Virus record (IMG/VR): IMGVR_UViG_3300027899_000001
Span: 186,001 to 250,000 of that record
Direction: 5' to 3' (one strand)
Length of the DNA: 64,000 nucleotides
A program made the position numbers and the translations under genes. Within the stretch, counting starts at the first letter, position 1. Each line of letters starts with the position of its first letter. Positions 36,753 through 64,000 of this stretch are shown piece after piece. The notes below the pieces were generated by a model. It worked only from the letters and a program-made list of their open reading frames with translations, searched no databases and had not been told where the DNA came from.

Positions 36753-37487
36753 ATGACTAAACAAGAAGTTGTACAATATGTTAATGGAGAAATCACAGCA
36801 TCGTGCTCTATTCCATTTTCTGTACCAGAAGCTGAAATATTAAGATTAATAGATTTAGAATCTAAATGGCTTTACCGTGAATATCGAGACGCAGTACAAG
36901 ATGGTTATTATGTGTTAGATAAAAAGTATTATCAAACATCTGAATGGAGGTCAACAAGAACATTTCAATTACCTGATTGCGTTATGGCAATTAAATATAT
37001 TTACGAAATGACTTCAGGCCAAAGAGTTTTTGGTATTCATGACCCAGATATGAATTTTGATAGATTAATGGCAGCTGATTTATATTTGACTCCTCTTTCT
37101 TCAGATCAAATAACATACAGAACAATTCAATGGAGTTTTTGGGATTTGGCAAAGCAATTTAACTTAAGAGATATTAATCATCATTTTAGTATAAATACAA
37201 AAAGATTAATAATTACAGGTAGAGATCCAGTAGAATCTCTTTGGCTTACAACATTAAATGCAATTCCAAATGAAGATCTTTATGATGATCCTGTTTTTAT
37301 ACGTTGGATAATAGCAAAAGCAAAAGTACAATTAGCAAGAATTATTGGAACATTTAACTATACACTTATTGGAGGCATTCAAATAAATTATAATGATATA
37401 AGAATAGAAGGACAAGAAGAATTAAAAGAATTAAAAGATAAAATTAAGAGCGATTCACCAGCTGATTGGTTCATGATGTTTTCATAA
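36753..37487 (+). CDS. Neck/head-tail adaptor protein, T4 gp13-like, 244 aa
   Basis: C-terminal AKAKVQLARIIGTFNYTLIGGIQINYNDIRIEGQEELKEL matches the gp13-type LPGGVxxN...E..E..L pattern. Confidence 0.65.
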   Translation: MTKQEVVQYVNGEITASCSIPFSVPEAEILRLIDLESKWLYREYRDAVQDGYYVLDKKYYQTSEWRSTRTFQLPDCVMAIKYIYEMTSGQRVFGIHDPDMNFDRLMAADLYLTPLSSDQITYRTIQWSFWDLAKQFNLRDINHHFSINTKRLIITGRDPVESLWLTTLNAIPNEDLYDDPVFIRWIIAKAKVQLARIIGTFNYTLIGGIQINYNDIRIEGQEELKELKDKIKSDSPADWFMMFS

Positions 37488-37503
37488 TGAACCACTTATG
37501 AAT

Positions 37504-38871
37504 ATGAAATTAATTAGAGAAAATATAATAAACGAAAAATTTAGAGAAGAATCTGATCCTATTAAAGATATGGGTATAGGAATGAAACGTATATATTATT
37601 CTTTTGCACCTCAAGAAACTCAATATATTTTATTACTTCGTTGTGAAAAAATGTCTGAAAAATTAGAAGATTTTTTCATACGTCATTCTTTTTTTTGGTA
37701 TAATAAGAATAATGCATGGGAATCATCTTGGGCATATCCAAAAGATAGATGTATAAGAGAAGCTTCAAAAATATTTAAACAAATAGAAAAACTTAAAACT
37801 TACAAAGTTGTATTAGACAGAGACGAAGAAGTCTTTTTTACAGTTCCTGGCTATAATGTAAATGAAGGTGTAGCAGATAAATATACGAGACAAGATCCAC
37901 ATTTATCTCGTGTTCCTGTAGAACATGAAGATTTTGAAAGAGGATATGAGGAAAAAGAAGCTGAAGGAAAACAAAAAGAAGATAGAGATAAAATTGTATA
38001 TAAGGTTAGTAATCATGTATACGTAATGAAAAATCCCACTTCTTTAGAAAAATTCTCTCCCGATTCACGTGCAATTGTAAATAAAAATGGAGATTTATAT
38101 GTTACTACATATAATGTTATGACTCATGATGAAATGGCTCGAAGATTGGAAAAATTAGGAGAATTAAAATATCAAGATAAATGGTGGCAAAAATCTCCAA
38201 CAGAATTTATCACTATTCAAAGAATGTATAAAGAAAATAAATTTGTATTAGGAGAATCTAATGAAGCTATTATGTATTATGTAGATGCTAGTAGAAGAGC
38301 GATATATAATATGCCTGATACTGTTGAATCTGCTAAAAAAGCATTTATACCTTTTCTTGAAAAAGCGAAAAAAGTAAATCCTCAATATCAATTTATTGAT
38401 AAATCTTTAGATGATTTACTTTATTATGCTCCACATCCTGTTAAAGAAAGTTTAATTAATGAGCCTAAATCAATTACACAAGCAGAAAAACAGTTAGCAA
38501 AAGATAGAGAAATGCCCGGACTTAATAAAAGAATATTAAAAACTATTAAAGATAGAGGTGGTGATATCGTCAAAATTTATGCTGTTAATGCAGATTATGT
38601 AAGAGATAAAAAACCAGGATTAAATTTCGATGGATTCACAGATGGAGGACATCATTATGTAACAAGCTTACCCGGATATAAAAAATGGATACCGGAAAAT
38701 GAAATTTGGATAGATGATGTATTTATGATGAAACCGAATGATTTACGAGCAATACTACAACATGAATTTACAGAAAGAAATCTAATGAAGTATAAACATT
38801 GGTCTTATGATAAGGCTCACGATTATGCAAATAAAAAAGAATCAGAATACAGAGAAAGAGTTAAAAAATAA
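37504..38871 (+). CDS. SDP-GIG-tagged multi-domain protein with C-terminal HExxE...H putative metal site
   Basis: MKLIRENIINEKFREESDPIKDMGIG (start likely the second Met at 37504); internal VNE and ESLINE junction-like sites; QHEFTERNLM...YDKAHDYA. Confidence 0.65.
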   Translation: MKLIRENIINEKFREESDPIKDMGIGMKRIYYSFAPQETQYILLLRCEKMSEKLEDFFIRHSFFWYNKNNAWESSWAYPKDRCIREASKIFKQIEKLKTYKVVLDRDEEVFFTVPGYNVNEGVADKYTRQDPHLSRVPVEHEDFERGYEEKEAEGKQKEDRDKIVYKVSNHVYVMKNPTSLEKFSPDSRAIVNKNGDLYVTTYNVMTHDEMARRLEKLGELKYQDKWWQKSPTEFITIQRMYKENKFVLGESNEAIMYYVDASRRAIYNMPDTVESAKKAFIPFLEKAKKVNPQYQFIDKSLDDLLYYAPHPVKESLINEPKSITQAEKQLAKDREMPGLNKRILKTIKDRGGDIVKIYAVNADYVRDKKPGLNFDGFTDGGHHYVTSLPGYKKWIPENEIWIDDVFMMKPNDLRAILQHEFTERNLMKYKHWSYDKAHDYANKKESEYRERVKK

Positions 38872-38897
38872 GGGAGAATTTTTCTCCCTTTCGTTTT
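38870..38897 (+). terminator. Intrinsic terminator-like hairpin
   Basis: AAGGGAGA-atttt-TCTCCCTT followed by TCGTTTT. Confidence 0.65.
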
Positions 38898-38904
38898 ATA
38901 GAAG

Positions 38905-38918
38905 ATATATAAAATAAA
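38905..38918 (+). promoter_or_regulatory. Putative late promoter motif (copy 5)
   Basis: Exact motif between the hairpin and the ATG at 38928. Confidence 0.6.
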
Positions 38919-38927
38919 AAGTATTTA

Positions 38928-39290
38928 ATGATAAAGGATATTTATATACGCTCTGTAGACGATCCCAATTTTCAATACGGTGTTTTAGAACATTCAGATG
39001 CAATAGAATCAATTATCGCAAAAATAAAAATGTTATTTGGAACTCGTCCTGGACAAGTAATGGGTGATATCGCATTTGGATTAGGTATAGAAGATTTAAT
39101 TTTTGAAACACGCGTAAATAAAATTCAATTAGAAGAAAAAATAAAATCCCAATTTGATATTTATATATCAGAAACAAAAGATTTTAAAATAACGCCTACA
39201 GTTTCATTTGGACGTGCTGATGGATATGATTATGCTATTATAGATGTTTTTGTAGATGATCAAAGATTGATAGGAATATTAGTTAAATAA
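38928..39290 (+). CDS. Baseplate wedge subunit, gp25-like, 120 aa
   Basis: IKMLFGTRPGQVMGDIAFGLGIEDLIFE matches the gp25 T..GE....P.FG..L..LLFE pattern; size and context fit. Confidence 0.75.
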   Translation: MIKDIYIRSVDDPNFQYGVLEHSDAIESIIAKIKMLFGTRPGQVMGDIAFGLGIEDLIFETRVNKIQLEEKIKSQFDIYISETKDFKITPTVSFGRADGYDYAIIDVFVDDQRLIGILVK

Positions 39291-39565
39291 TGAAAGCAAA
39301 AAGAGTATTTGAAAAATTTGAAGAAGGAACTGATCCTATTGATGATATGAACATAGGAAAGGTAGTATGTCCTTATTGTAAAGGCCATGGATATACAGAT
39401 GAACACGATCCTCTTTGTTATGATCCAAGAACAGGAGAACATGATTGTTATGGATGTCCTATACAAGTTCCATATGATTATTGCAATGGAACTGGAGAAA
39501 TATTAAAAAAGGATATTGCTAGACATCAAGCAGAAGAACAAAATTGGGACGATTTGCCCTTTTAA
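39290..39565 (+). CDS. Tagged small Zn-finger protein with SSB-like C-terminal tail, 91 aa
   Basis: MKAKRVFEKFEEGTDPIDDMNIG; CPYCKGHG, CYGCP, YCNGTG; ends WDDLPF. Confidence 0.65.
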   Translation: MKAKRVFEKFEEGTDPIDDMNIGKVVCPYCKGHGYTDEHDPLCYDPRTGEHDCYGCPIQVPYDYCNGTGEILKKDIARHQAEEQNWDDLPF

Positions 39566-49436: not shown

Positions 49437-50060
49437 TTAAATATATTTATGAAGAGTTGCAGATCTGTTATCAATTATCTTTGAGCCCTGAATTAAAATT
49501 TTATTATCATTAATATATTCACGAATATATTTATCTGACATACCAGTGTCAAAGCATATAAAATCCCCCCATATTTCTTGAGGCATATATTCTAAAGACG
49601 TCAATTCTTTATTATGAGATATATTAAAATTATCTTTTATTATTCTTGGACAATTTTTTAAAGATAATAGCTTATTTTCAAAAAGCATTATAGATAATCC
49701 TATTTCTTTTGGTATACCTTCTAATGACGTAAGTTGATTTTTTCCAATATACAAATTAAAATCTACTTTTTTTGGAAATCCTTTAAAATTTTTTAATCCG
49801 CTTTCATACATTGATATTGTGCCGTGAATCTCATTAAATTTAATAAATTCAGGAAATTCTCCATTTGGTAAAGGTATGGCATGAAAATTTATACCTCTTG
49901 CATTAATAGTAAAATCATCATTTATAGTAGGCTCATATACATTTTTCTCATATTTTTCTAGCCATTCTTTAATTAACTTGCGAGATCCTATACCCATATC
50001 TCTTATAGGATCAGAATCTTCTCTAAATTTCTCATTTATGTGTTCTCTTACTATTTTCAT
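49437..50060 (-). CDS. Tagged LRR-like protein, 207 aa
   Basis: MKIVREHINEKFREDSDPIRDMGIG; repeats LKNFKGFPKKV, LTSLEGIPKEI, LLSLKNCPRII, LTSLEYMPQEI. Confidence 0.75.
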   Translation of the reverse strand: MKIVREHINEKFREDSDPIRDMGIGSRKLIKEWLEKYEKNVYEPTINDDFTINARGINFHAIPLPNGEFPEFIKFNEIHGTISMYESGLKNFKGFPKKVDFNLYIGKNQLTSLEGIPKEIGLSIMLFENKLLSLKNCPRIIKDNFNISHNKELTSLEYMPQEIWGDFICFDTGMSDKYIREYINDNKILIQGSKIIDNRSATLHKYI

Positions 50061-50377
50061 TGTATTAAATATCTTTCATTCATATCTACACGATAAACAA
50101 CATAACTATTATCATAAAAATTTACCCTTTCACCGCCATTATAACTTTCAAAACTATCTATAATACAAGAACGTTTTTTACCTCCAATAAATACACCTGT
50201 TATTTTTTTACCTTTTAAAGAATTTAAAAAATCCAACCACGAAGATAACCAAAAATTATTACCGCTTACATAATATTTAGAACGTTCTTCTTCAAAATTA
50301 ATACCTCCTATTCCCAGATCATGTATAGGATCTGATTCTTCTTTGAATAATTCATTTATATGTTCTCTTACTATCAC
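50057..50377 (-). CDS. Tagged hypothetical protein, ~106 aa
   Basis: Likely GTG start at 50377 overlapping the upstream TAG: (M)IVREHINELFKEESDPIHDLGIG. Confidence 0.7.
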   Translation of the reverse strand: MIVREHINELFKEESDPIHDLGIGGINFEEERSKYYVSGNNFWLSSWLDFLNSLKGKKITGVFIGGKKRSCIIDSFESYNGGERVNFYDNSYVVYRVDMNERYLIQ

Positions 50378-51183
50378 TAATTCCAATTTATTTTTATAGT
50401 ATATTTAAATCTACGATATCCATTTGGATAACTTTTTATAAATTCTTTAGAATGTTCTATACTTTTTATTGAATTAAAAACATTTAAATATTCAGTTTTT
50501 GGTGCGAACGCCCAACGAGATGAAAAGAGGCCAGAAGATATTTTATAACGTTGTTCTGATAAATACTCCATCATTCCAGATTCTTTTAACCAATAATCTA
50601 CATTATTTTTAAACGCAACATTATATGGAGGATATTCCACAGCAATTTGAAGATTACTTCCATCTATCTCATATTTATATAAATTTATAAAATGGTGGTC
50701 TGTCATTAAATCTGTAAACTTCTGCAGTGAATCTTCAATAGCTTTTCGTATTCCTATTCCTAAATCATATACTGGGTCAGATTCTTCTGAGAATTTTTCA
50801 TTTAGATTGCGATTCCATGTCTTATACCCCATTTTTTCTAATTTATTGAAAAGTTTTGTTATTACAAATGATGTAGTTTGGTCAAATCCTTTCATAGAAG
50901 GTATTTTAATATATTTACTAACATATTTACATAAATCTTCATATTTATCGTTATCTAAATGGTCTTGTGCTGTAAATTCTTTAAAAGACTTTGTATATAT
51001 TTTTAGAATATTATCTGGAATTTTATTAGTTTTATAAATAATAGGAATTACTTTTAATAAAAAATCTGCAGCGCCTTCTAACGTATCAAACGATCTTTCT
51101 ACATAAATACCAATTCCTAAATCACGAATAGGATCTGATTCTTCTATAAATTTCTCATTTATATGTTCTCTTACTATTTTCAT
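50377..51183 (-). CDS. Two-module tagged polyprotein, 268 aa
   Basis: N-terminal tag plus internal LNEKFSEESDPVYDLGIG at 50752-50805. Confidence 0.75.
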   Translation of the reverse strand: MKIVREHINEKFIEESDPIRDLGIGIYVERSFDTLEGAADFLLKVIPIIYKTNKIPDNILKIYTKSFKEFTAQDHLDNDKYEDLCKYVSKYIKIPSMKGFDQTTSFVITKLFNKLEKMGYKTWNRNLNEKFSEESDPVYDLGIGIRKAIEDSLQKFTDLMTDHHFINLYKYEIDGSNLQIAVEYPPYNVAFKNNVDYWLKESGMMEYLSEQRYKISSGLFSSRWAFAPKTEYLNVFNSIKSIEHSKEFIKSYPNGYRRFKYTIKINWN

Positions 51184-51524
51184 CTTTCAAATCCCATCTT
51201 TTTAAATCTCTCCATTAATAGCTCTGGCCAATAATATACTCTACATGCCTGCTCTCCTGTAGAAATTCCTTCAAACGAAATATATTCTGTTAAAAATTTT
51301 TGTATAATTAAAAAATATGTATGATTTATAGCTCCACCATATCTTAAAATATCATCAGGAATTTTTGATGTTTTTAAAAGTTGCGGAATAATAGTTATTA
51401 AATAATCTAAAAATTTGTCTACATTTACAAAATCTCGATGCGCATATAATCCAATATTCATATCTCTTATGGGATCCGATTCTTCTTTGAATGCTTCATA
51501 TATATGTTCTCTAACTAATTTCAT
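51180..51524 (-). CDS. Tagged protein (cargo family A), 114 aa
   Basis: MKLVREHIYEAFKEESDPIRDMNIG; IP....T.KIPD.I...Y...KMG motif shared with paralogs. Confidence 0.75.
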   Translation of the reverse strand: MKLVREHIYEAFKEESDPIRDMNIGLYAHRDFVNVDKFLDYLITIIPQLLKTSKIPDDILRYGGAINHTYFLIIQKFLTEYISFEGISTGEQACRVYYWPELLMERFKKMGFER

Positions 51525-51990
51525 GCCGAATGTTCTCCCATTATGATAGTAAAATATTCAATTACACTGGGTTTTATTTTAAAAATTACTTCTGAACAAT
51601 TAAATTCAGTAGGAGGTGCACTAGACGAATTTGATTTAATATCTACCTCGTCTTCCATAAAATACAAAATGCCAGCATGTTTTAAAAGATTTTTAGAATA
51701 CTCAATTTTATTTAAAGGTTTTCCATCAAGAGTTTTAAATAAATTAGAATATGTAAGAACTCTTAATTGTTCGTTGGCTAAATCTATAATTAAACCTCTT
51801 ATATTTTTTTATCACTTATATGCCAATTATTATTCATAGTAGATAGATATTCAAATTTGAAAGTGGTATCATATTTTATTATATCTTCAGGAGATTTTTC
51901 TATATTTTTTACAATGCCAATGCCTAAATCATGAACAGGATCTGATTCTTCTCTGAATTTCTCGTTAATATGTTCTCGTACTATTTTCAT
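51521..51990 (-). pseudogene. Tagged gene (cargo family B) interrupted by a frameshift at an A7 tract
   Basis: The 63-aa ORF stops just after A7 (T7 at 51804-51810). Adding one A gives a 156-aa ORF ending in an ATGA overlap at 51521 and resembling 42183..42662. Confidence 0.7.
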
Positions 51991-52705: not shown

Positions 52706-53554
52706 ATGAATCATCAAAAAATTTATGAAGCTATAATAACTAAAGCAAAACTAGAAAATAGAAAAAAACTTATAAAAAATAATTTAAATTATATATATTA
52801 TGAAAATCATCATATAATTCCTCGATGCTTAGACGGAACAAATGATGAATATAATTTAGTTTTATTAACTGCTAAAGAACACTATATATGTCATAAATTA
52901 TTAACTTATATTTATAAAGGAAACAGAAAAATTGCGTGTGCATTTTATCGAATGGCCTTTAATAAAAAAGAAAAATACAAAATTTCATCAAGAGACTATG
53001 CATATGCAAGAGAACTAATTAGTAATACTCCTGTATCAGAAGAAACAAGAAAAAAAATAAGTAAAAAAAGCAAAGAACATAAAACATTTTTAGGAAAAAA
53101 ACATACAGAAGAATCTAAGAAAAAAATAGGATTAGCACAAAAAAATAAAATTGTTTCAGCGAAAACTAAACAAAAACAAAGAGAAGCTAATTTAGGAGAA
53201 AAAAATCCGATGTATAAAAAATGCAGTCATTTTAAAGGAACCCATTTATCTGAAGAAAAAAAGAACCACTTAAGGAATTTATATTTAGGAAAAACCCTTG
53301 AAGAATTATATGGAAAAGAACGTGCAAAAGAAATAAAACAAAAAAATAGTAAAAATAATAAAGGAAAAAATTTAGGAAAAATAAAATCAAAACAAGAGCG
53401 AAAAATTATATCAGATTCTGTTAAAGAATATTATAAGTCTTCTAAAGCTAAAATAAAAACTAGTGAAACTACAAAATTAGCAATGCAAAGACCAGAGGTT
53501 AAAGAGAAACAAAAATTAGCATGGATAAAACGAAAAGAAAACAAACAATTATAA
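52706..53554 (+). mobile_element. Freestanding HNH homing endonuclease (T4 Mob-like) with NUMOD3-type repeats
   Basis: YYENHHIIPRCLDGTNDEYNLVLLTAKEHYICHKLL; Lys-rich HTEESKKKI repeats. Confidence 0.85.
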
Positions 53555-56500
53555 AGATGGTAAAGGCCACTGACCTGGAAAACCATATGTTTTCGCACCA
53601 GTTGGCACAAAATCTTTATATAAAAATTTTAACCAAGCAATATTAGTAGGCCTAAGTAATTGATAACTTGGAAAAGGATCGTTTGTAGTAATCAATGACA
53701 TCGATGCTATTAGAGTATTTTTATATGCTTTATAATCAAGAACAGTGCCTTTCAATTTAGTTTCATAGTTAGAAGATAAAAGATCTGCGTTTTTTAGTTT
53801 AAATTTATCTGTTATATTATTTAATACATTATAATTTATATTATCATCCAAATCACCTGCAATATTTATTACTGGTTTAGGATTTTTTGCAGTTAATCCA
53901 AAATTTGCTGTGTCTGGGCTTATCGCTATAGGTAATGCAGCAATACTTTTATTAACATTATCAGCCATAGAATTTAAAGTATTCATTTGATTGTTAATAG
54001 ATTTTTCTGTTGAATCTAAAGAACTTGTAATACCTTTTACTGATTTGCCTCCTGAATATGCATCTCGTAAAATAGCATATTCAGTTTGATATTTCCATAA
54101 TTTTCCACTTTCGGTTGCTATTGCTTCATAATATATTGCAACGCCTTCAACCCAATTTCCATACGCTTTCGCATATTCTAAAGACGTTGTTGTATATTTT
54201 GTAGGTTTATTAGCTTTAAGATTTTTAAGTTCACTTTTTAATCTTTTAACAGTTTCTTTAGATTTATCTACATTTTCTTTAGCTTTATCCATAAGGGGTT
54301 TTATGCTAATTTTTTTCAAATTTGCTATCTGATCCGATATTTCTTTTTTGAGTGCTTGTATTTCATTTTTTAATGCAATCGTAGGATCTCCAAACGGCGT
54401 TACAAAATTTGTATTAAGATTTACAAATAAACTCCAAGGAAATAAATAAATTCCGCATATAGTTAATCCCAATAATATAACTCCATAAGACGTACTTATG
54501 GGTTTTATTGGAACATACACAACTGGAAAAGGAATGGGGGTTGGAAATATCCAGCCTGTTGACCAACCCATTGCAGGATTTGTTACACTTGCTAATGTAG
54601 CATATGAACAATATTTTAACCAATATTGAATATCACCATATCCATATTTTGATTTAGGATTCATATAAGGATCAATTTCTTCTGATTCACAGGTTCTTGG
54701 TTCTGCAATTGAATATAATCTTGCTTGTTTTCCGTTATATTCTGTAATAGAATATGTAGTAAACATGGAAATACTATCAATAAGTTTTTGCAATTCTTCT
54801 ATTTCTACAGGCAATTTTAAATATTCTTTCCATAGAGCTTCAACAAACGTAAAAAGATAATTTCCTTCTTTAACAGTTTCTGTTCGTTGTGTAGTTTCTT
54901 TTTTAATTAAATTATATTTTTTAACTATCGTATCAGCATTTAAATATAATTCGAATAAAAACATAACTCTATTAACAGCAATTAATTTATCATTTCCTTC
55001 CAATTTTCTATTATCATTTGCCAATCCCATTAACCAAGATTTAAGATCAGATAATTTTTTATTTTGTGAATAAACAGCCATCGCTTTTTTAAACCAATCA
55101 CCCAATGATAATCCTTTTTCAATTTCTTTTATTCCTTCATTTATTTTTTGTGCAAGTTTATCTTTATTGTATCCATCAAGAACATATCTTTTTCTTATAA
55201 ATTCATTTATTTTATCTCGTATTTCTATTTCTAATTTAGTTGGATTTTCTATACCATTAAATACTGGACCTAAATTTAATGAATAATATTCAAATAAATC
55301 ATATTCATTTGATTTAGCTTTTGTTAACTTAGCAGCATTTTGTGCCATATCTCTTAAGAGATTTAAATGTTTATAAAATTTTTCGTCTTCTGTTTCTATT
55401 TGTTTTTTTATTTCATTTAATGTTTCATTTTTTGCATGTTTTTCAACATTATCTTGTCCAGCTATTTGTTTAATTTTATTATCGTGTTCTTCATTAATTA
55501 AATTATATGTTAATAATAATCCTGCATATTGTTTGTTAATTCCTGTATATTGATCATGAGTAGATGCATCATCTACAATAGAAATTGACAACATTATAGG
55601 ATATAGTGTTTTAATATAATAATATTTTAAAAATACTTTTGCACTGTTTAAAGTTGCATATTTTTCATTCAAAGAATTAATTAATGATGTTAAGTAATCT
55701 TCAGGAGGCTCCGATATATCTCTAAGAACTATTTTATTGGTAGTTATTTCATCTATGTATCCTGGAATAGGAGAAAAAATAGATTGTGTTCCTAAATTAG
55801 CAATTTTAGTCTTTTGATCTACAAAAGAATCTTTAGGAAGAAATGAAATTAATGCATCAGTTTTTCTATTATTTTGTATAATAGCCATAGTAACTAAATC
55901 CTCATTAACTGTAGCTTCAACTGTAGTTTCTTCGTTTTGAATAATTTCACATGATGTATTTTTTAATCTTTCTTCCAATGGTCTGTGTGGCACGATGACA
56001 TCATCGATGACGACTGGACAATTAAAAGTCGATGTAAAAGGAATCTTATTAATAGAAACATTAAATGGCTCAAAATCACTCTGACATATAGCATCTGTAG
56101 CTATCACTTTTAAAGTTTGAGAAGAGTGTTTATGTAATTTTTTTCTATTAATTAAATATAATGAAGTTATTACTGTAATTGCTATTAAAATATCATCAAT
56201 ATTTTTAAAAGAATTCATTAAATCTTCAAATTGTTTTTTAGTTGAAGATAATCTTTTATCTGTTGAATCTTTTATTTCTTCGTATTCACTTTTTATTAAT
56301 GCATATGTATTACGAATTAATTTTTGAATATATTTGGTTCTATATTTTGAGGGATGAACAGTTTTAGTTAATAAATCTTTAGTCATATCAACATTATGTT
56401 GAAGTAAATATTTATATGTTTGTAGTTTTTCTTGAAATTGATTTGTTTGTAGTTTCAATGCTTCTTTCTCAGCATTTATTCCTTCTTTAATATTTATGTC

Positions 56501-57001
56501 TTTAATAAAATTGTATGTTAAATATGCTCCAGCAGCAATAACTAATGCTGAATTAATTTGTAATTTTAATTGTTGCACTTTATTTTTATTAATTTCTTTT
56601 TCTATATTATTTAAACTGCTTATCGTATTTAAGATTTCTGGCGCAGTTAAATTATCATTTAGAATAGGAATATTATCTATTGATGCTTCATTATGACATG
56701 CTAATAATATTTGTGATAAATTTGAATTGTCGATTTCTTTAGCTGTAAACTTTAATATTGTTTTTGCTCTTATATCAGTTCTTAAAAATTTTGCAGTATC
56801 TTCTTTACTATATCCACCTTTTAAAATCTTACTAAGTATTAATGCTAAAGCTGCCATGGCAGCTATTTTTAATAAATCTATTTTCTTAGGAATACTCGCA
56901 AATAATTTTTCTAATTCCAAATTAATTTTAAATTTGGCATCAGCTTTAGCCATTTCTGTTTTTTTCTTGACTAATAATTTTGCTTTATTTAATAATCCCA
57001 T
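53549..57001 (-). CDS. Large helical protein with hydrophobic segments, 1150 aa, function unknown
   Basis: Coiled-coil-like stretches and four hydrophobic segments; same operon as the gp5-like gene. Confidence 0.5.
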   Translation of the reverse strand: MGLLNKAKLLVKKKTEMAKADAKFKINLELEKLFASIPKKIDLLKIAAMAALALILSKILKGGYSKEDTAKFLRTDIRAKTILKFTAKEIDNSNLSQILLACHNEASIDNIPILNDNLTAPEILNTISSLNNIEKEINKNKVQQLKLQINSALVIAAGAYLTYNFIKDINIKEGINAEKEALKLQTNQFQEKLQTYKYLLQHNVDMTKDLLTKTVHPSKYRTKYIQKLIRNTYALIKSEYEEIKDSTDKRLSSTKKQFEDLMNSFKNIDDILIAITVITSLYLINRKKLHKHSSQTLKVIATDAICQSDFEPFNVSINKIPFTSTFNCPVVIDDVIVPHRPLEERLKNTSCEIIQNEETTVEATVNEDLVTMAIIQNNRKTDALISFLPKDSFVDQKTKIANLGTQSIFSPIPGYIDEITTNKIVLRDISEPPEDYLTSLINSLNEKYATLNSAKVFLKYYYIKTLYPIMLSISIVDDASTHDQYTGINKQYAGLLLTYNLINEEHDNKIKQIAGQDNVEKHAKNETLNEIKKQIETEDEKFYKHLNLLRDMAQNAAKLTKAKSNEYDLFEYYSLNLGPVFNGIENPTKLEIEIRDKINEFIRKRYVLDGYNKDKLAQKINEGIKEIEKGLSLGDWFKKAMAVYSQNKKLSDLKSWLMGLANDNRKLEGNDKLIAVNRVMFLFELYLNADTIVKKYNLIKKETTQRTETVKEGNYLFTFVEALWKEYLKLPVEIEELQKLIDSISMFTTYSITEYNGKQARLYSIAEPRTCESEEIDPYMNPKSKYGYGDIQYWLKYCSYATLASVTNPAMGWSTGWIFPTPIPFPVVYVPIKPISTSYGVILLGLTICGIYLFPWSLFVNLNTNFVTPFGDPTIALKNEIQALKKEISDQIANLKKISIKPLMDKAKENVDKSKETVKRLKSELKNLKANKPTKYTTTSLEYAKAYGNWVEGVAIYYEAIATESGKLWKYQTEYAILRDAYSGGKSVKGITSSLDSTEKSINNQMNTLNSMADNVNKSIAALPIAISPDTANFGLTAKNPKPVINIAGDLDDNINYNVLNNITDKFKLKNADLLSSNYETKLKGTVLDYKAYKNTLIASMSLITTNDPFPSYQLLRPTNIAWLKFLYKDFVPTGAKTYGFPGQWPLPSL

Positions 57002-57558
57002 TACAATTTAACTTTTATCTCTTGTCTTTGTTTTCCTTTATTATATGTATAAACTACAGTATCAAATTTAACTTTAAAGGGCTTAATTTTTTTTGTGTAT
57101 TTTTTTCCTGTTTTTGGAAGAACATAAGCAAGAGTCATATGAGGATGATAGTCTGGAAAAGATTGAGTATTTGGAAATCTTCTTTCAAGCAAATCATGAT
57201 ACATTTGAAGTTCTTCAGATATAGGAACATCATATTTTACAACATCATAATCATCACATTTAAATATGGAAATTTCTTTAATAGTAGATTCAACAGGTTC
57301 AAAAGTTTTCATAAATTCTTTAACATCATTTGGATCGACTTCATTTAGATGAAGTCCAAATAATAAAGTGCAATGAGGTTTATGTTCTAAACCAAAATCT
57401 TTAAATTCATCATCATAAATATCATCTTTTTCAATAATAGATAAGTGCTCATTCCAGTTTGGAACATCTGCATATAACATAACACAACCATAATCTAATT
57501 TTTTAGATTGCGTTTTTTCTTCTGATAGCCAATTTTTAAAAGTTATAAATTTATGCAT
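57001..57558 (-). CDS. 2H phosphoesterase, T4 gp57B/Acb1-like, with capsid-targeting-like leader, 185 aa
   Basis: Two HxT motifs (PHCTL, PHMTL); SFPDYHPHMTLAY parallels the Acb1 DFDDYTPHITLSY segment as I recall it; leader MHKFITFKNWLSE. Confidence 0.75.
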   Translation of the reverse strand: MHKFITFKNWLSEEKTQSKKLDYGCVMLYADVPNWNEHLSIIEKDDIYDDEFKDFGLEHKPHCTLLFGLHLNEVDPNDVKEFMKTFEPVESTIKEISIFKCDDYDVVKYDVPISEELQMYHDLLERRFPNTQSFPDYHPHMTLAYVLPKTGKKYTKKIKPFKVKFDTVVYTYNKGKQRQEIKVKL

Positions 57559-57955
57559 CTTCCCAGTATTTTTTTAATATTTTTTCATGCTGCTTTTTTC
57601 CTAAATCTGGCAAATCTTCAAACTTTTTAATACCTTGCCGTTTAAATTTTTTAAATTGATATGTATATGCAACTCTTTCTGTATTATTAGTAGGATATTC
57701 TTTACCATCATCTTTAGAACCTTTTTTATATAAAAGATAATGAATTAATTCATGTTTCATCCAATTAAGAGGGTCTTTTTTATAATCATAGTCACTTCTA
57801 ATTCTTACTACATTATCATCAGAATCAAATTCAGTAGGATCATTTTTTCCTTCTGGCCAATCTTCCTTTTTAACTATAACAATAGGTAAATCATAATTAT
57901 CTACTTTAATAAGTCGTGATTCATTTAACCAATTTTTATAACTTTTAAATTTCAT
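57551..57955 (-). CDS. HExxH zincin-like metalloprotein with capsid-targeting-like leader
   Basis: Start probably at the second Met (MKFKSYKNWLNE); KHELIHYL with downstream ExxAY. Confidence 0.6.
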   Translation of the reverse strand: MKFKSYKNWLNESRLIKVDNYDLPIVIVKKEDWPEGKNDPTEFDSDDNVVRIRSDYDYKKDPLNWMKHELIHYLLYKKGSKDDGKEYPTNNTERVAYTYQFKKFKRQGIKKFEDLPDLGKKQHEKILKKYWEDA

Positions 57956-57968
57956 TATATTTTTTATT

Positions 57969-58748
57969 TTATACACTTATAAGAACATTAGTTGATAAAA
58001 TAGTTTGTTTAGTTGCTTCAACAAGCCCTACGTTTACTCCAGGTGTTGCCGGAAATTTTTGATCTAAACTTGCAGCCATTGTTGATAATAACGCAATTAA
58101 AGGTTCTCCTCCAACTGCTGTTTGATATGGGCCTGGACCAATTTTAGTTTTTTGACTTCCATTAACTATAACTTCATCAGCAGTAACTTCTGCTAATGCT
58201 GCTGCAGCTATATGAACTTCATTTTTCGTAGTTACATTAATAACATCACCATCCATTTGAATAATTGAATCATTATTAGGAGTTGATAAAGTTATTAACG
58301 TATCTGGTGTTATTTGAATATATGATTCTTTAAAATAAATTTGAAATCCACTTTTAACTTGAAATATAACAGTAAGTTCTTGTTCAGGATCATATAGAAG
58401 AACATGAGTTCCTTGATAATCATCTTTAATTTTTTTAATAAGTTCAGTGTCAATATTTTGAATAGTTGTATATTCTGGCGCATACATATCACCATTATTA
58501 AATTGAATTCTTACAAATTGGCCAACTTTAGGAACAGAAAGAGATCCAGCGCCATCACCGGCAAATATTGTAGAATTTATAGGAACAGCCCATGGTAAAT
58601 ATTTATCTTCTATTCCATCAAATAAACCCAATACTTTAACTTGACATCTTCCTGAAAATGTAGTATCTTTAGTGTTAACTACAATTCCAATCCAGTCATT
58701 ATCGTGATAATCATGTTGAATAAAATCTATATCAGATGTATATGGCAT
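57969..58748 (-). CDS. Baseplate central spike, gp5/gpV OB-fold, 259 aa
   Basis: WIGIVVNTKD...GRCQVKV...LPWA...SVPKVGQFVRIQFNNGD..P.Y; no lysozyme domain. Confidence 0.8.
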   Translation of the reverse strand: MPYTSDIDFIQHDYHDNDWIGIVVNTKDTTFSGRCQVKVLGLFDGIEDKYLPWAVPINSTIFAGDGAGSLSVPKVGQFVRIQFNNGDMYAPEYTTIQNIDTELIKKIKDDYQGTHVLLYDPEQELTVIFQVKSGFQIYFKESYIQITPDTLITLSTPNNDSIIQMDGDVINVTTKNEVHIAAAALAEVTADEVIVNGSQKTKIGPGPYQTAVGGEPLIALLSTMAASLDQKFPATPGVNVGLVEATKQTILSTNVLISV

Positions 58749-58749
58749 A

Positions 58750-59451
58750 TTAATGTATTAGTTTATATTTTTGTAATAATTTTATTATTCGTATTCTTCT
58801 ATTTTTTACTTTCCAATAAAGAAGATTACGAGATAAATTAGAATTCACTGTTGCTCCAAGTTTTATAATAAATTCAGCAGTTTTAATTTTTCCATTATAA
58901 CAAGCTGTTGCTAAAGAATTACTTAATACTTCAGGAGTTAATTGTATTCCATTGTCTATTAATAATTGAAGTATATGAACATGATCAGTTTTAGCTGTCA
59001 TATAAAATGCTCTTGAATTTTCTAAGTTTACGTCTGCTCCATGATCTATCATAAATTTAACCATTAAGGAATTACCTTTAGTACAAGCTTGCACAAGAAA
59101 TTTTCCATTAGACATATTTAAATCAACGCCTTCTTCAACTAATATTTTAAGTATTTCTAAATTATTATATACAATTGTGTATCTTAAATAATCACTATCT
59201 TGATAATTACTACGTGTAATAGATTTTTTTGCTTGTCTATATAAATAAGAAACAAATTCAGGTTTATTAGATGATATGCATGCTAATAATTTAGAATGAG
59301 CAGAAGAACTTGCATTTGGATAACTACGGCCGCTTTTTTCAAACCAAGTATTAATAGCGTGTTCCATTCCAATTCCCATATCTTGTATAGGATCGGATTC
59401 TTCTGAAAATTTTTCATTTATCCATTTTCTATATGCTGAAAATTTTGTCAT
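58750..59451 (-). CDS. Tagged ankyrin-repeat protein, 233 aa
   Basis: MTKFSAYRKWINEKFSEESDPIQDMGIG; ANK motifs (LKILVEEGVDLN, VKFMIDHGADVN, AEFIIKLGATVN). Confidence 0.8.
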   Translation of the reverse strand: MTKFSAYRKWINEKFSEESDPIQDMGIGMEHAINTWFEKSGRSYPNASSSAHSKLLACISSNKPEFVSYLYRQAKKSITRSNYQDSDYLRYTIVYNNLEILKILVEEGVDLNMSNGKFLVQACTKGNSLMVKFMIDHGADVNLENSRAFYMTAKTDHVHILQLLIDNGIQLTPEVLSNSLATACYNGKIKTAEFIIKLGATVNSNLSRNLLYWKVKNRRIRIIKLLQKYKLIH

Positions 59452-59453
59452 CG

Positions 59454-60500
59454 TTAAAATAATTCATATTTTTTTAATAAGTCATAAACTCTTATTCTTC
59501 TACGTTGTTGAGACCATTTTTTCAATAACATTTTTAAAAGACTATTTACTTTTGCGCCTTTTTCTACTAAAAATTCTATCATTTTCAAATCTCCTCTGTC
59601 ACAAGCACTAGTTAATGCAGCATCTAAAATTTCTTTATCTATATCTATATTATCTAACAGATATTGTATAACATTTTTATGTCCAGCATTAACTGCTACT
59701 AAAAATAAATCTCTATTATATCCAATGCCAGTATTTGCGCCATTGTTAATTAAATATTCTAACATAGGTATATTGTCATATACCGTTGTATTTCTAAGTA
59801 TACAAGGATTTGCATTTACATTTGCTCCTGCTTCAACTAACATTTTAACTATTTCAAAGTTATTATAATTTACTGCTGTTTCTAAATAATCACCATAATT
59901 ATAATTTAAATTAGGAACTTTTGGTATAAGATATTTAACGAATTCTATTTTATTATCTACAATACTTTGTCTTAATCTTGAGCGAATATCATTAAAATAT
60001 AAAGGATATAATTTATCTCTAAAATAATCATCCATTATTCTTTCAATTCCAATACCCATATCATGAACTGGATCTGATTCTTCTTTAAATTTTTCATTTA
60101 CTGACGTATTTGGCGAAATGTTTGTATGATATTTACTATTTAATAATTTAATAACTTGTTCAACCATATCTATTACTTTAATATTTTCCCATTCATGACT
60201 ATATGCGTTTTCAGTATGTTCGAATGCATTTTTAAATGCTATATTATCATTTGCGTTAATTGTCAGTTCTTTTAAAGTAAAATAAAGAAGCATAACACAT
60301 ATAGTTTTTTCAGCATCTGTTTTCTTTTTATCTCGAAAATTTTTATTATAGAACGTTGTTGTACTTATAGGCCCCATTCTTTTTATTTCCTCTTTCCATA
60401 AATTTTGTAAATAAGGACGGCCTATACCCAAATCTTTTATTGGATCAGATTGATCAGAAAACTTTTCATTTAACCATTTTCTATATGCGTAGAATTTCAT
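59454..60500 (-). CDS. Two-module tagged polyprotein, second module ankyrin repeats, 348 aa
   Basis: N-terminal tag; internal VNEKFKEESDPVHDMGIG at 60048-60101; VKMLVEAGANVN, IEFLVEKGAKVN. Confidence 0.8.
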   Translation of the reverse strand: MKFYAYRKWLNEKFSDQSDPIKDLGIGRPYLQNLWKEEIKRMGPISTTTFYNKNFRDKKKTDAEKTICVMLLYFTLKELTINANDNIAFKNAFEHTENAYSHEWENIKVIDMVEQVIKLLNSKYHTNISPNTSVNEKFKEESDPVHDMGIGIERIMDDYFRDKLYPLYFNDIRSRLRQSIVDNKIEFVKYLIPKVPNLNYNYGDYLETAVNYNNFEIVKMLVEAGANVNANPCILRNTTVYDNIPMLEYLINNGANTGIGYNRDLFLVAVNAGHKNVIQYLLDNIDIDKEILDAALTSACDRGDLKMIEFLVEKGAKVNSLLKMLLKKWSQQRRRIRVYDLLKKYELF

Positions 60501-62653
60501 TGTTCTAATTTACTATTAGTTGCTTGACTTACTTTAGGTTGTTTTAAAAGATCGCCTTCTATTTTATTATTTAATATAGTTGATGGTGTTGCTTCTATTA
60601 TTCTAGTTGTAGGTATTGTTTTTGTTCTAACATTTGGTGTTTCCATTTTAATTGCTGCGCCATCTGCAATTTCATTAGACAAACCTGTTGATGATTTTTG
60701 TAATTTCATTCCGCCATCTACATTTTCTGATAAATGATCAGATGCTTTTCCTCTAGTAACACCTGATCCTTCTGTAGTTGAAGATAAACGTTCAGACGCT
60801 TTTCCTTCATTTAAAGCAGAACCTTCTGTATTTGAATCTAAACGTTCTGATGATGTTCCACGATTAATATCAGATACTAATGATTGATCATTTAGATTAC
60901 TTGATGCAGTTCCTCTTAACATTGTTGGTTCTTCATTTAAATTTCCTGATACTGCATTAGGAGCTACATGAGGTATACCCGCATTATTATCTAATGGTCT
61001 ATTAGTAGATGATAATAAAGATTGCTCGATTACTGCAGCTCTATATTGAGCAGCGCCTTCAACACTTTTAAGTATATTGATTTCACCTTGTCCAGTTAAA
61101 TTTGTAGCCATAGAATAATCTTTTATTTTTTCCCAAACTCCTTTTTCATTTAATACAATATTTGCAGCTTCTATTAATGCTATTGTATTTTCATCTGTTG
61201 CATCTGATTTAGAAATTTTAGAAAGTTCAGTTATAAATTGTCTCATTATCATATCTGTTTGAATGGGCTGTTCAAGACGAGAAGACGGCGCATTATTATA
61301 TTCATTCGCTACTTCATTTATTCCTTTTCTAATTAAACCTAATGCAGAAACTATGTTTTTTGATTGAAGAGCTGTTGTAATTTCTGTTAAAGAAACTCCT
61401 AAATTTGGAATCGTTGTTATTTTTGCTTTATCAATAATTTTCTTTACAAAATTTGTTCCTAATGCTTTTCCTATATCAATTGCGTTACCCACCCATGTTT
61501 CTGGTCTTACAGCATCTTGATTTTCTGGAATTCTATCATTATATGCATTACTTTGAGTATATCTTGTATCGCCTGTAGTATTTTGATTTATTCTTTCATT
61601 ATATGGTCTCCCAGATTTATGTTGAGTTAAAGGACTTCCAGGATCTCTATCTTGTGCTAATTGTAGAGCTACGGGATATTGATACGCATTTATAGGATTT
61701 TCACTTAGTGTTGAAATTTCATCCTTTGATCTATTAACACCATTTAATTTTCTATCACTTAAAAACATATGTTTAAATACAGGATATGTTTGTAATTCTT
61801 TAATGTTACCAATTTTAACTCCAAATTTTATAGCACCGGGTGTTGGATCGCCTGCAATTGTTAAACCATTTAAATGTTCATATGTTACATCTGTAATATC
61901 AAACTCGCACATTTCACACGTAATTTCCCATGTAGGTAATATATCATCAAGTATAGTTAAAAATAAAGGTGAATCTGATGCAGCACTTTTTAAATTATCT
62001 CCGTATCCAGAAGCTGTTGCACTTTCTGATAATTTAGCTAAATGAAAAGTTCTAAATTCACTAAGATAAATTTTTAATGTAAAATATCTCATCATATCAG
62101 GAAGAACCCATCTTTGATAAACATCATCCCAAGCAATTTTTTTATAAAGATTCATTAAATAACTCATTCTTCCATCTAATCCTTCAAGACATGTGATATT
62201 TATTCTTTTATCATTAAGAATTCTTTGGCCTTTAGTAGGATCAACTTTTAACAATTCGTTAACACCATCAATTGATTGAAAATAATAAGGAAAATCATAT
62301 TGTAAATTTTCAAATTTTAATATAAATTCTCTTAACATTTCAGCACGTGTTGGTTCATTAGCATTTTCTAAATACGAAACAGCAGAATAAGAATTTTCAG
62401 GAGTAAAAGAGCTATAAACAGAATTTCCAGTAAATCCACCAATAGTTTTAAGTGTATCTGCAATAAAAAATAAAGGATGTGGCATTACATCATATAATGC
62501 ACTGTTAGATGCACTATTATAATTTACATCTGATTGAGATCCGAATATTAATTTAAAAGAATAGTATGTTGGTTCATCAAAACGTTTTGATAAAGTATAT
62601 TTTTCAGCTATCTTTGGAGATGCGCCTCTAAATTGATTATACATAGTTTTCAT
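60497..62653 (-). CDS. Putative tail/baseplate protein with low-complexity repeated C-terminus, 718 aa
   Basis: Lies between hub-like and spike genes; ~19-aa repeats (RGTSSERLDSNTEG, EGKASERLSSTTEG, RGKASDHLSENVDG). Confidence 0.45.
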   Translation of the reverse strand: MKTMYNQFRGASPKIAEKYTLSKRFDEPTYYSFKLIFGSQSDVNYNSASNSALYDVMPHPLFFIADTLKTIGGFTGNSVYSSFTPENSYSAVSYLENANEPTRAEMLREFILKFENLQYDFPYYFQSIDGVNELLKVDPTKGQRILNDKRINITCLEGLDGRMSYLMNLYKKIAWDDVYQRWVLPDMMRYFTLKIYLSEFRTFHLAKLSESATASGYGDNLKSAASDSPLFLTILDDILPTWEITCEMCEFDITDVTYEHLNGLTIAGDPTPGAIKFGVKIGNIKELQTYPVFKHMFLSDRKLNGVNRSKDEISTLSENPINAYQYPVALQLAQDRDPGSPLTQHKSGRPYNERINQNTTGDTRYTQSNAYNDRIPENQDAVRPETWVGNAIDIGKALGTNFVKKIIDKAKITTIPNLGVSLTEITTALQSKNIVSALGLIRKGINEVANEYNNAPSSRLEQPIQTDMIMRQFITELSKISKSDATDENTIALIEAANIVLNEKGVWEKIKDYSMATNLTGQGEINILKSVEGAAQYRAAVIEQSLLSSTNRPLDNNAGIPHVAPNAVSGNLNEEPTMLRGTASSNLNDQSLVSDINRGTSSERLDSNTEGSALNEGKASERLSSTTEGSGVTRGKASDHLSENVDGGMKLQKSSTGLSNEIADGAAIKMETPNVRTKTIPTTRIIEATPSTILNNKIEGDLLKQPKVSQATNSKLEQ

Positions 62654-62661
62654 ATCTTCTT

Positions 62662-64000
62662 CTAAATTTTTGTTTTATTAACTGCTTGCACGGGTAAAGG
62701 TGGTGGCCATTCTCTTCTTGTTAAAATAAATTCTTGTGTAAAATTACTAAAACTAATTTCATCACTTTTGCTAGTACTACTCCATGATAAAACAAAACCT
62801 TTAACAATGTACCATCCACTATAAAATCTATCTAACATATCATTAAACTCTGCGTCAGGATTTATTTTCATATTTTCAATAGAATCTACTTTAATTATAG
62901 CCATAGGTAATTTATCTCCTCGTATTATATTAAAATTATTTCCATTAACTTCTACATGTACATTTAATTTATCAAGTTCTTTGTTATTAATTAAATTTTG
63001 AACTTTAGCAAGCTGATAACTCTTATGATGATTTCCTGTCCATTGTAAATTATCATTATCAGGATTACTAATAGTATATTGTACTCCTAACCAAGGATAT
63101 TTTTCATAAATATCTGTATAACTATAATTAGCACGTTTTAAATCTTTAGTATTAGTAGAAGCATCAAATTTAGCGCGGCCTCTTAATAAAATCATTTTAT
63201 TTGATTTATCTTCATCATATGTAGGTTCTACTGTTATTGCCCAATAATTTTTATTTTTTTCCGTTTTTGGATTTTCATATACATCTTTATTATGTTCAAA
63301 CATCTCACATGTCATTTTTGTTCCAATTTGAAATGTTATATTTGATGATTTATTTATTGGTCTCCAAGTTATAATATAAAAGGGCGTAGTTCTAAAACTT
63401 AAATAATTTGAAAAAACTTTTACCATTGGCCTAGTTTTTTCTTCTTCTGTATTAGCACCATAATTCCAGTTTTTATCAAAATTTGAAATTAACGCCGCAA
63501 CATCTACTTCTGATTCTGCTGACATTAATTGTTTATTAAGATTAATAAAATTTAGATTATAATACACGTCTATCCAACATGCGTAAAAAGATTTATTATC
63601 TCTCCATGCTCTTTCAATTAAATTATTAATAAAAATATCTCCTGCTATATTAGCTTTGAGCCAAATTTGTTTATCATTAGTATCATCTTCATTAGATGAA
63701 AATCCTAATTTATATCTTTTTGCAAAATCTTTAGCTGCTTCAAGTGTAGTTCCTTCAAAATGATAGTCATTTTTTTGACTTTTAAGTCCTGGAATAAATA
63801 ATTCTCCATAAAAAGACATTCTAATTAGTTCTTTTCTTTCAGTTGAAGTTGGTAATACATGTACTCCAGTAATAACATAATCATTGCGAATAATTTTTAA
63901 TGTATCTGTTTTATTACGTATAGCAACTGAAATTATATCTCCATCTTTTGGCATTTCTTTTGCTAAAAATAATTGACTTATAAATGCACAATCTAATGAA
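62662..64000 (-). CDS. Baseplate hub protein, gp27/gpD-like, 5' end beyond the window
   Basis: Frame stays open upstream of 63954 to the edge (SLDCAFISQLFLAKEMPKDGD); C-terminal VEVNG.NF.I.RGD...YSGWYIV......F.QE..L.R hub-type motif. Confidence 0.6.
   Translation of the reverse strand, partial: SLDCAFISQLFLAKEMPKDGDIISVAIRNKTDTLKIIRNDYVITGVHVLPTSTERKELIRMSFYGELFIPGLKSQKNDYHFEGTTLEAAKDFAKRYKLGFSSNEDDTNDKQIWLKANIAGDIFINNLIERAWRDNKSFYACWIDVYYNLNFINLNKQLMSAESEVDVAALISNFDKNWNYGANTEEEKTRPMVKVFSNYLSFRTTPFYIITWRPINKSSNITFQIGTKMTCEMFEHNKDVYENPKTEKNKNYWAITVEPTYDEDKSNKMILLRGRAKFDASTNTKDLKRANYSYTDIYEKYPWLGVQYTISNPDNDNLQWTGNHHKSYQLAKVQNLINNKELDKLNVHVEVNGNNFNIIRGDKLPMAIIKVDSIENMKINPDAEFNDMLDRFYSGWYIVKGFVLSWSSTSKSDEISFSNFTQEFILTRREWPPPLPVQAVNKTKI

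Follow-up and report, generated by a model that had tools for sequence, protein, structure and literature searches.

Cassette-tagged ankyrin-repeat proteins beside the spike gene of a freshwater Lak-related megaphage as candidate virion-packaged, protease-released binders

We analysed a stretch of 64,000 nucleotides from IMG/VR virus record IMGVR_UViG_3300027899_000001 (positions 186,001 to 250,000, hereafter the window), in which two adjacent genes encode ankyrin-repeat proteins of 348 and 233 amino acids (aa), ANK348 and ANK233. Both proteins carry a short peptide cassette, made of a leader, a putative cleavage site and an acidic tag, that marks a large, undescribed family of proteins which we regard as cargo. 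In the reading that we favour, to which we give a probability of about 0.45, the pair would be ankyrin binders packaged in the virion and released by a phage protease, in a freshwater megaphage related to the Lak phages.

The ankyrin gene pair and its cassette

The two open reading frames (ORFs) lie in tandem and can be divided into the following parts, listed with the evidence used to delimit them:

59454-60500, minus strand: ANK348, 348 aa, two modules in the order cassette, helical module, cassette, ankyrin domain (ORF, Pfam, AlphaFold)
60465-60500, minus strand: ANK348 leader MKFYAYRKWLNE, residues 1-12, with the putative cleavage site L-N-E at its end (sequence reading)
60420-60464, minus strand: ANK348 tag 1 KFSDQSDPIKDLGIG, residues 13-27, predicted disordered (alignments, AlphaFold)
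60102-60419, minus strand: ANK348 module 1, residues 28-133, predicted helical (low-confidence AlphaFold helices)
60048-60101, minus strand: ANK348 internal cassette VNE-KFKEESDPVHDMGIG, residues 134-151, putative cut site plus tag 2 (sequence, alignment)
59457-60047, minus strand: ANK348 ankyrin domain, residues 152-348, predicted as one post-tag helix and six helix pairs (AlphaFold, Foldseek)
59460-59501, minus strand: ANK348 C-terminal motif RRIRVYDLLKKYEL, predicted last ankyrin helix (sequence; AlphaFold helix 336-344, predicted local distance difference test (pLDDT) 91-93)
58750-59451, minus strand: ANK233, 233 aa, stand-alone cassette plus ankyrin domain, tandem paralogue of ANK348 module 2 (ORF, Pfam, alignment)
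59413-59451, minus strand: ANK233 leader MTKFSAYRKWINE, residues 1-13 (sequence reading)
59368-59412, minus strand: ANK233 tag KFSEESDPIQDMGIG, residues 14-28 (sequence, alignment)
58759-58800, minus strand: ANK233 C-terminal motif RRIRIIKLLQKYKL (sequence, alignment)

Both proteins matched the Pfam family Ank_2 (E = 2e-23 for ANK233 and 8e-17 for ANK348; 83 and 62 bits against a gathering cut-off of 27.3 bits), and the models Ank, Ank_3 and Ank_4 were likewise above their cut-offs. Residues 11-231 of ANK233 aligned with residues 134-347 of ANK348 at 38% identity (E = 2e-46), so that, judged by their alignment, the two are tandem paralogues, ANK348 having an extra N-terminal module. A first-pass annotation, made from the DNA letters without database searches, had already noticed two paralogous ankyrin modules, one of them stand-alone and the other the second module of a polyprotein, and the internal cassette at residues 134-151 of ANK348 bears out this division. 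Since Met is absent upstream of that cassette, it does not provide an independent start.

The AlphaFold model of ANK348, computed from an eight-row alignment of paralogues, contained one helix and six helix pairs over residues ~150-348 (pLDDT 86-97), and its ankyrin repeats are predicted to stack as one elongated solenoid; the top Foldseek matches of this domain were ankyrin and designed ankyrin repeat protein (DARPin) structures. Ankyrin repeats are binding modules. Residues 1-142 had pLDDT below 50 and were modelled as low-confidence helices, with the leader as a short helix (residues 3-13), and both cassettes had pLDDT values below 50, the internal one sitting within a linker of equally low confidence. 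Module 1 matched no Pfam or PHROG family, and an Atlas search returned no usable feature match for it and, by structure, merely helical-bundle look-alikes. The two proteins terminate in RRIR(I/V)..LL.KY.L. The first-pass annotation had placed a K or R before this motif, which does not hold for ANK233 (the residue is R in ANK348 and N in ANK233). The motif is similar to the consensus for helix 2 of ankyrin repeats, and in the AlphaFold model it falls in the last helix pair (helices 320-332 and 336-344, pLDDT above 90); as modelled, it belongs to the ankyrin fold rather than being a tag of its own. The first 28 residues of the ANK proteins, by inspection, are charged and contain no hydrophobic stretch, and a Sec or Tat signal was ruled out for want of a hydrophobic core.

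On a metagenome contig of 133,176 bp (28% G+C), the window corresponds to positions 59205-123204 in reverse complement. This contig is colinear with 176-309 kb of a 405,016-bp IMG/VR record that has terminal repeats and is rated 100% complete, and the window is therefore part of a phage of ~405 kb. An identical ANK233 occurs on that record and on a 378-kb contig, both from other samples. The phage has a major capsid protein of the T4 gp23 type, with 48% identity to its counterpart in the Prevotella Lak megaphages. Among deposited phages, blastn with positions 57969-62653 of the window and tblastn with a tagged ORF of 63 aa (E <=1) found no match. One sequencing run, a freshwater DNA metagenome that is probably the source sample, contains the stretch, and no RNA run was found to do so.

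The cassette is tripartite: the acidic tag KFxEESDPIxD(M/L)GIG follows a short leader and an [I/L/V]-N-E site. Its leader is helical, 10-12 residues long and mostly of the form MK(I/L)V(R/K)E(H/Y); the ANK pair carries a variant, MKF..Y..W, of 12-13 residues, followed by tags of the form KF(S)(E/D)(E/Q)SDPI.D(M/L)GIG. We counted 15 copies in the window, 21 on the 133-kb contig and, in the 405-kb genome, 88 by a profile search of the genome or 87, in 63 of its 490 ORFs, by a hidden Markov model applied to the ORF set. Sixty of these 87 are at the extreme N-terminus, where they typically read MK(I/L)V(R/K)E(H/Y)INEKF, and 27 are internal, with up to six cassettes per protein in this genome. Glu precedes the tag in 86 of the 87 and I, L or V stands two residues earlier, again in 86. 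The MK.V.E part is missing from the internal copies, which retain [ILV]NE and the tag; selection thus maintains the site where an N-terminal signal would be meaningless, which fits a cleavable linker, and in the AlphaFold model of ANK348 the cassettes are predicted to be disordered and to lie between folded modules. The third codon positions of the cassette vary (58% identity), indicating selection on the peptide and not on the DNA. The leader and tag perceived in the first-pass annotation are therefore real and not a product of chance, and a nucleotide-level repeat, such as a promoter or a recombination site, is ruled out. The cassette falls outside all Pfam and PHROG families.

In a DNA-pattern scan of IMG/VR, six samples contained the cassette. 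A profile search of 1.84 billion cluster representatives of metagenome proteins (clusters defined at 50% identity) yielded 1,641 proteins with the cassette at E <=0.001, 700 of them at E <=1e-10, with up to 10 cassettes each and a median spacing of 127 residues. In the best 150 of these proteins, which contain 468 cassettes, Glu was present in 466 and I, L or V in 449. Their sources name them no further than "hypothetical protein"; the motif strings of the cassette were absent from the searchable literature, which likewise yielded nothing relevant on huge-phage ankyrins or on ankyrins injected to counter defences. Pfam ankyrin repeats were detected in eight of the 63 tagged ORFs of the 405-kb genome (otherwise there was one weak match to a domain of unknown function), all 11 Ank_2 matches of a six-frame search of this genome fell inside tagged ORFs, and 38 of 100 scanned tagged metagenome proteins had ankyrin repeats while no other family recurred. 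Because ankyrin is thus the characteristic cargo both in the genome and in the metagenomes, ANK233 and ANK348 are typical members of a tag-plus-ankyrin architecture and not isolated oddities. The first-pass annotation had treated them as two unusual genes, a view that gives way to that of a family with 87-88 cassettes in one genome and more than 1,600 metagenome clusters; its remark that ankyrins are uncommon in phages applies to the deposited ones, of which only five in 50,697 have similar ankyrins (four Wolbachia WO phages and one uncultured huge phage), but not to the present phage clade.

The spike operon

ANK348 and ANK233 are the third and fourth of eight minus-strand genes that span 63954 to 53549, abut or overlap at their stops and starts, and form one operon in the order p430, p718, ANK348, ANK233, spike, p141, p185 and p1150. 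The other members are:

60497-63954, minus strand: p718 and p430, the upstream genes of the operon (ORFs)
57969-58748, minus strand: spike or baseplate central hub with a gp5-type OB domain, 259 aa (Pfam Phage_base_V, E = 8e-9; PHROG baseplate, baseplate hub)
57551-57955, minus strand: p141, 134 aa from Met8, leader MKFKSYKNWLNE without a tag, then a small HExxH...E zincin-like domain
57001-57558, minus strand: p185, leader MHKFITFKNWLSE without a tag, then a 2H phosphoesterase with two HxT motifs (Pfam)
53549-57001, minus strand: p1150, at the end of the operon, large coiled-coil protein that includes a hydrophobic segment (ORF)

The spike ORF, whose OB domain is of the gp5/VgrG kind according to Pfam, starts one nucleotide after the stop of ANK233, so the ankyrin genes lie directly upstream of it, as the first-pass annotation had stated. 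At the head of the operon, p430 is a baseplate-type protein common to Lak and Flavobacteriia phages (27% identity to the Lak protein over 98% of its length).

The two genes that follow the spike share the leader of the ANK pair. In fact, of all ORFs in the genome only five have the variant MKF..Y..W(L/I)(N/S)E: ANK348, ANK233, p141, p185 and one ORF of 634 aa elsewhere. The start of p141 at Met8 is given by its Atlas record and its orthologues; across 15 orthologues the leader is kept and H68, E69, H72 and E93 are invariant, the last Glu standing 21 residues past HExxH. The AlphaFold model of p141 was confident (pLDDT 90) and its structural neighbours were all zincin metallopeptidases, headed by the VgrG2b effector domain and ArdC, while Foldseek gave no match at E <=0.001. 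With Z scores of at most 5.5 these likenesses are weak, and p141 as a candidate zincin-like metallopeptidase is only a lead. The p185 protein matched 2_5_RNA_ligase2 above the cut-off (E = 2e-9, 38 bits), and its match to the anti-CBASS family Acb1 (24.7 bits) fell under the 27-bit cut-off. These two neighbours provide the only hints toward the inhibition of host defences. For the ANK proteins themselves, the anti-defence role put forward in the first-pass annotation is plausible, a reasonable guess for putative binders.

A relative whose p141 orthologue is 62% identical has, after its spike gene, three different small tagged ORFs, then orthologues of p141, the 2H protein and p1150 in the same order and, further on, two polyproteins, one a tagged ankyrin protein and the other with seven cassettes or more. 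Since the relative carries other tagged ORFs at this place, the spike region has a conserved core surrounded by a variable island of tagged cargo, and the description of the ANK genes as inserted there is apt. On a related contig, the p1150 orthologue and a tagged ankyrin polyprotein are separated by a protein with a Fib_succ_major domain and one that resembles staphylococcal nuclease (L072:6310-8607). Synteny with Lak-C1 was uninformative, as p430 alone was detectable there. The same holds for four related contigs in which neither a spike homologue nor Peptidase_S77 was seen, as they are 6-40% complete.

Prohead protease and a proposed route of delivery

The contig of the window encodes, outside the window, a protease of the T4 gp21 family (Peptidase_S77; E = 2e-17, 61 bits against a cut-off of 27 bits), which forms the N-terminus of an ORF of 781 aa (G001:306658-309003, minus strand). 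The prohead protease gp21 of T4 favours (L/I)-x-E. The remainder of the 781-aa ORF is scaffold-like and contains 10 [LIV]NE sites where ~1 was expected, which makes this ORF the most enriched among 427 untagged ones (Poisson p = 1e-7, significant after correction for 427 tests); judged by these sites, it looks as a scaffold dismantled by the protease might be expected to look. The second most enriched is an untagged ORF of 181 aa (G001:157439-157984, minus strand) with five [LIV]NE (p = 5e-6), a candidate core or scaffold protein. A tagged ORF with two cassettes lies two genes upstream of the protease ORF, with one plus-strand ORF between them.

The capsid protein bears a site of the same type at its propeptide boundary. 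Its propeptide can be aligned with T4 gp23 over residues 7-19 of both proteins, and the last Glu before the conserved core is found in A-L-N-E, followed by AAMGG, with no Glu in residues 44-88; the LNE is kept at the same column in Lak-A2. The capsid ORF of Lak-A2 (L069:4429-6414) extends upstream when TAG is read through, which fits the stop-codon recoding reported for Lak phages; the phage of the window showed no sign of recoding. In T4, gp23 sheds a propeptide of 65 residues (PMC9958956), and internal proteins enter the head by means of a capsid targeting sequence of ~10 residues, MKTYQEFIAE, which is cut once at its end, the cargo being retained (PMC8442874). The proteases of T4, phiKZ, 201phi2-1 and SPN3US cut after Glu at a three-residue motif, and giant-phage heads contain large paralogue families of ejection proteins, such as a 20-member family in SPN3US (PMC5694885). 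One T4 internal protein, IPI, is injected and inhibits the GmrSD restriction enzyme (PMC9958956). A leader typical of the present genome, MKIVREHINE, is equal in length to the T4 sequence, shares M1, K2, E6, I8 and E10 with it and likewise ends in I-x-E.

These elements can be combined in the following scheme. The cargo proteins would be produced together with the hub and the spike, and the leader would bring them into the assembling prohead, like the T4 capsid targeting sequence. There, the gp21-type protease would cleave after the Glu of each (I/L/V)-N-E, removing the leader and splitting ANK348 into a helical module of ~124 aa and an ankyrin module of ~212 aa. The freed modules would remain in the virion and reach the host along with the DNA, whereupon the ankyrin groove may bind a host protein and block or redirect it. 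The first-pass annotation had suggested that the ANK proteins are delivered rather than secreted; the charged, non-hydrophobic N-termini, the [I/L/V]-x-E site, the prohead protease, the concentration of [LIV]NE in its scaffold and at the propeptide boundary of the capsid protein, and the hub-spike operon speak for this indirectly but convergently, and delivery itself is what we infer from them.

We also considered an extension of this scheme, which we hold to be unlikely as a whole. In it, the cassette would be a compact, reusable and previously undescribed load-and-cut signal; diversified ankyrin binders (natural DARPins), the zincin-like protease and the 2H phosphodiesterase would act as counter-defence before phage gene expression; and the leader variants (MKIVREHINE and MKF..Y..WLNE) would address different parts of the particle.

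Several observations weigh against packaging and release. The cassette is most strongly conserved downstream of the presumed cut, unlike the T4 targeting sequence. Depletion of [LIV]NE in the cargo parts was not significant (10 against 14.2 expected, p = 0.16), nor was that of [LIV]xE. The 63 tagged ORFs amount to 13% of the ORFs of the genome, which is much to pack into a head, and on other contigs some tagged genes lie amid replication genes. A profile search of the kind that found 88 copies of the cassette in the 405-kb genome gave no match in Lak-A2 and Lak-C1, although their capsid is of the same lineage; the cassette is not tied to the protease lineage. The likeness of the leader to that of T4 is weak and does not demonstrate homology, because just five of ten residues are shared and several of these are forced by the site itself; we found no sequence homology to T4 IPI, IPII, IPIII or Alt, the Pfam and PHROG scans of the ANK proteins listing ankyrin families alone. 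A predicted complex of protease residues 1-165 with ANK233 residues 1-40 pointed neither way. Finally, that single DNA run is the only one with the stretch, and the packaging reading is a gene-based one.

Some of these observations would suit a cassette that is not cleaved at all and serves as a docking or linker motif that binds the same partner in every case, be it a host protein or part of the phage factory or scaffold. On this view, ordinary expression would yield tagged proteins that work within the infected cell, without being borne by the virion, and the polyproteins would be multivalent beads on a string. The conservation of KFxEESDPIxDMGIG over the leader, the regular recurrence of modules every ~127 aa in proteins with up to 10 of them, the tagged genes amid replication genes and the undepleted [LIV]NE of the cargo all agree with such a motif. 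A docking function does not readily account for the near-constancy in cassettes of Glu (553 of 555) and of the aliphatic residue two positions before it (535 of 555), nor for p141 and p185, which retain leader and site without the tag, and the concentration of the same tripeptide in the protease-scaffold ORF and at the propeptide boundary of the capsid protein is hard to explain without cleavage. We consider an uncleaved docking motif unlikely, though the strongest of the alternatives.

It is less probable, and on balance distinctly unlikely, that the tagged proteins are located in the head as structural components and not as effectors, forming a scaffold or inner-body-like mass that organizes the 405-kb DNA or sets the size of the head. 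The abundant inner-head paralogue families of giant phages, which are processed by the prohead protease (PMC5694885), offer a precedent, and most tagged modules are ORFans of ~100 aa. Arms-race cargo is a better match for the high diversification of the family, with its 1,641 clusters at 50% identity, and for the variation of spike-adjacent gene content between close relatives; the binding nature of ankyrin repeats also argues against a purely structural mass.

The position of the ANK genes invites another explanation, namely that the four genes flanking the spike encode tail-tip cargo, travelling inside or on the hub-spike complex and the first to be released, like type VI effectors that ride on VgrG, with the MKF..Y..WLNE leader as the address of that compartment. 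Four of the only five ORFs with this leader variant flank the spike, the gene order spike, p141, 2H and p1150 is kept in a relative, and the best structural neighbour of p141 is the VgrG2b metallopeptidase effector domain (Z = 5.5, weak). Both ANK proteins, however, bear the full tag common to ~60 ORFs scattered over the genome, a T4-type protease works in the prohead and not in the tail, and Pfam and PHROG scans detected no PAAR, MuF or adaptor domain. Tail-tip carriage therefore appears improbable.

Very improbable is an ankyrin target in a eukaryote, such as a protist or animal hosting or grazing the bacterial host, in parallel to the ankyrins of Wolbachia WO phages and of the "ankyphages" of sponge symbionts: the deposited phages with similar ankyrins are indeed WO phages and one uncultured huge phage only, and the sole non-self match of a word search was eukaryotic, but the proteins lack both a signal peptide and a secretion domain, the sample is a free-living freshwater metagenome, the likeness to WO ankyrins is generic (29% identity) and the cassette points to the phage's own protease. 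Two further types of processed leader or polyprotein, the double-glycine or ribosomally synthesized and post-translationally modified peptide (RiPP) leader and the adenain/SUMO-protease polyprotein, were dropped because Peptidase_C39 and C48 are absent from the 405-kb genome (control genomes were matched) and the cargo reaches 450 aa.

Related systems, remaining features and significance

If packaging and release occur as we favour, the system is best filed with the protease-processed, capsid-targeted internal proteins of T4 and giant phages, from which a new conserved tag, the polyproteins, the scale and the ankyrin cargo set it apart. Like the T4 proteins IPI, IPII, IPIII and Alt, the tagged proteins have an N-terminal leader of ~10 residues that ends in (I/L)-x-Glu, and a gp21-family protease and a gp23-type capsid protein occur in the same genome. 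In T4 the cargo is retained in the head and injected, whereas here we infer packaging and cleavage from the genes. The cargo proteins of the two systems are unrelated in sequence, those of T4 being a handful of small basic proteins and those described here, which share 87-88 cassettes per genome, ankyrin-repeat proteins and ORFans. Moreover, the 15-residue acidic tag past the cut is better conserved here than the leader, and the cassette is also internal, in polyproteins with as many as 10 modules. The head ejection and inner-body proteins of phiKZ, 201phi2-1 and SPN3US (gp175/gp245 protease) offer a parallel in giant phages with large families of head-protein paralogues, whose propeptides are removed after Glu at a three-residue motif and which enter the cell with the DNA; their motif is (S/A/G)-x-E, their propeptides often exceed 100 residues, and they have no common tag, ankyrin cargo or beads-on-a-string polyproteins. 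Wolbachia WO phages and "ankyphages" also encode ankyrin repeats, which are thought to act on the eukaryotic host after export by the bacterium, but they lack the cassette and their likeness is generic (~29% identity). Type VI effectors adjacent to VgrG and MuF polymorphic toxins similarly join a conserved N-terminal trafficking part to variable C-terminal cargo, and the type VI effector genes cluster beside a spike gene; the trafficking part described here is a peptide of 25 residues instead of a folded domain.

Beyond the spike operon, the window contains two more cassette islands and several other ORFs of interest:

49437-51990, minus strand: second cassette island, ORFs of 207, 109, 268, 114 and 63 aa (no Pfam family)
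33974-39565, plus strand: third cassette island, a 452-aa polyprotein with four cassettes and tagged ORFs of 457 and 91 aa (no Pfam family)
32698-33915, plus strand: 405-aa protein containing S1 RNA-binding domains in three stretches (E = 1e-22), immediately upstream of the four-cassette polyprotein
27301-32556, minus strand: 1751-aa ORF, mostly collagen-like Gly-x-Gln triplets (9-nucleotide period, ~476 copies), probably a fibre protein
12289-27297, 8224-12249 and 1110-5846, minus strand: consecutive giant ORFs of 5002, 1341 and 1578 aa
52159-52596, plus strand: small heat-shock protein of the HSP20 family (precomputed Pfam match)
52706-53554, plus strand: 282-aa ORF with an HNH-like motif and repeated basic GKKHTEESKKKI-like units, by eye resembling a homing endonuclease

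The triplets of the 1751-aa ORF explain the 43% G+C and the strong skew seen at 28-32 kb.

If the ANK proteins and their relatives are indeed loaded by the leader and released by the protease, uncultured megaphages would have scaled up the strategy known from T4 and phiKZ into a modular cassette system, with dozens of cargo modules per genome, many of them in polyproteins and ankyrin-dominated. The cassette would then provide a sequence rule to predict which proteins unculturable phages inject, a pool of over 1,600 candidates for host manipulation that could be screened against defence systems and, possibly, a portable tag for the packaging of foreign proteins. It would also account for a sizeable share of the "dark matter" of megaphages, as the tagged proportion of the 405-kb genome suggests.

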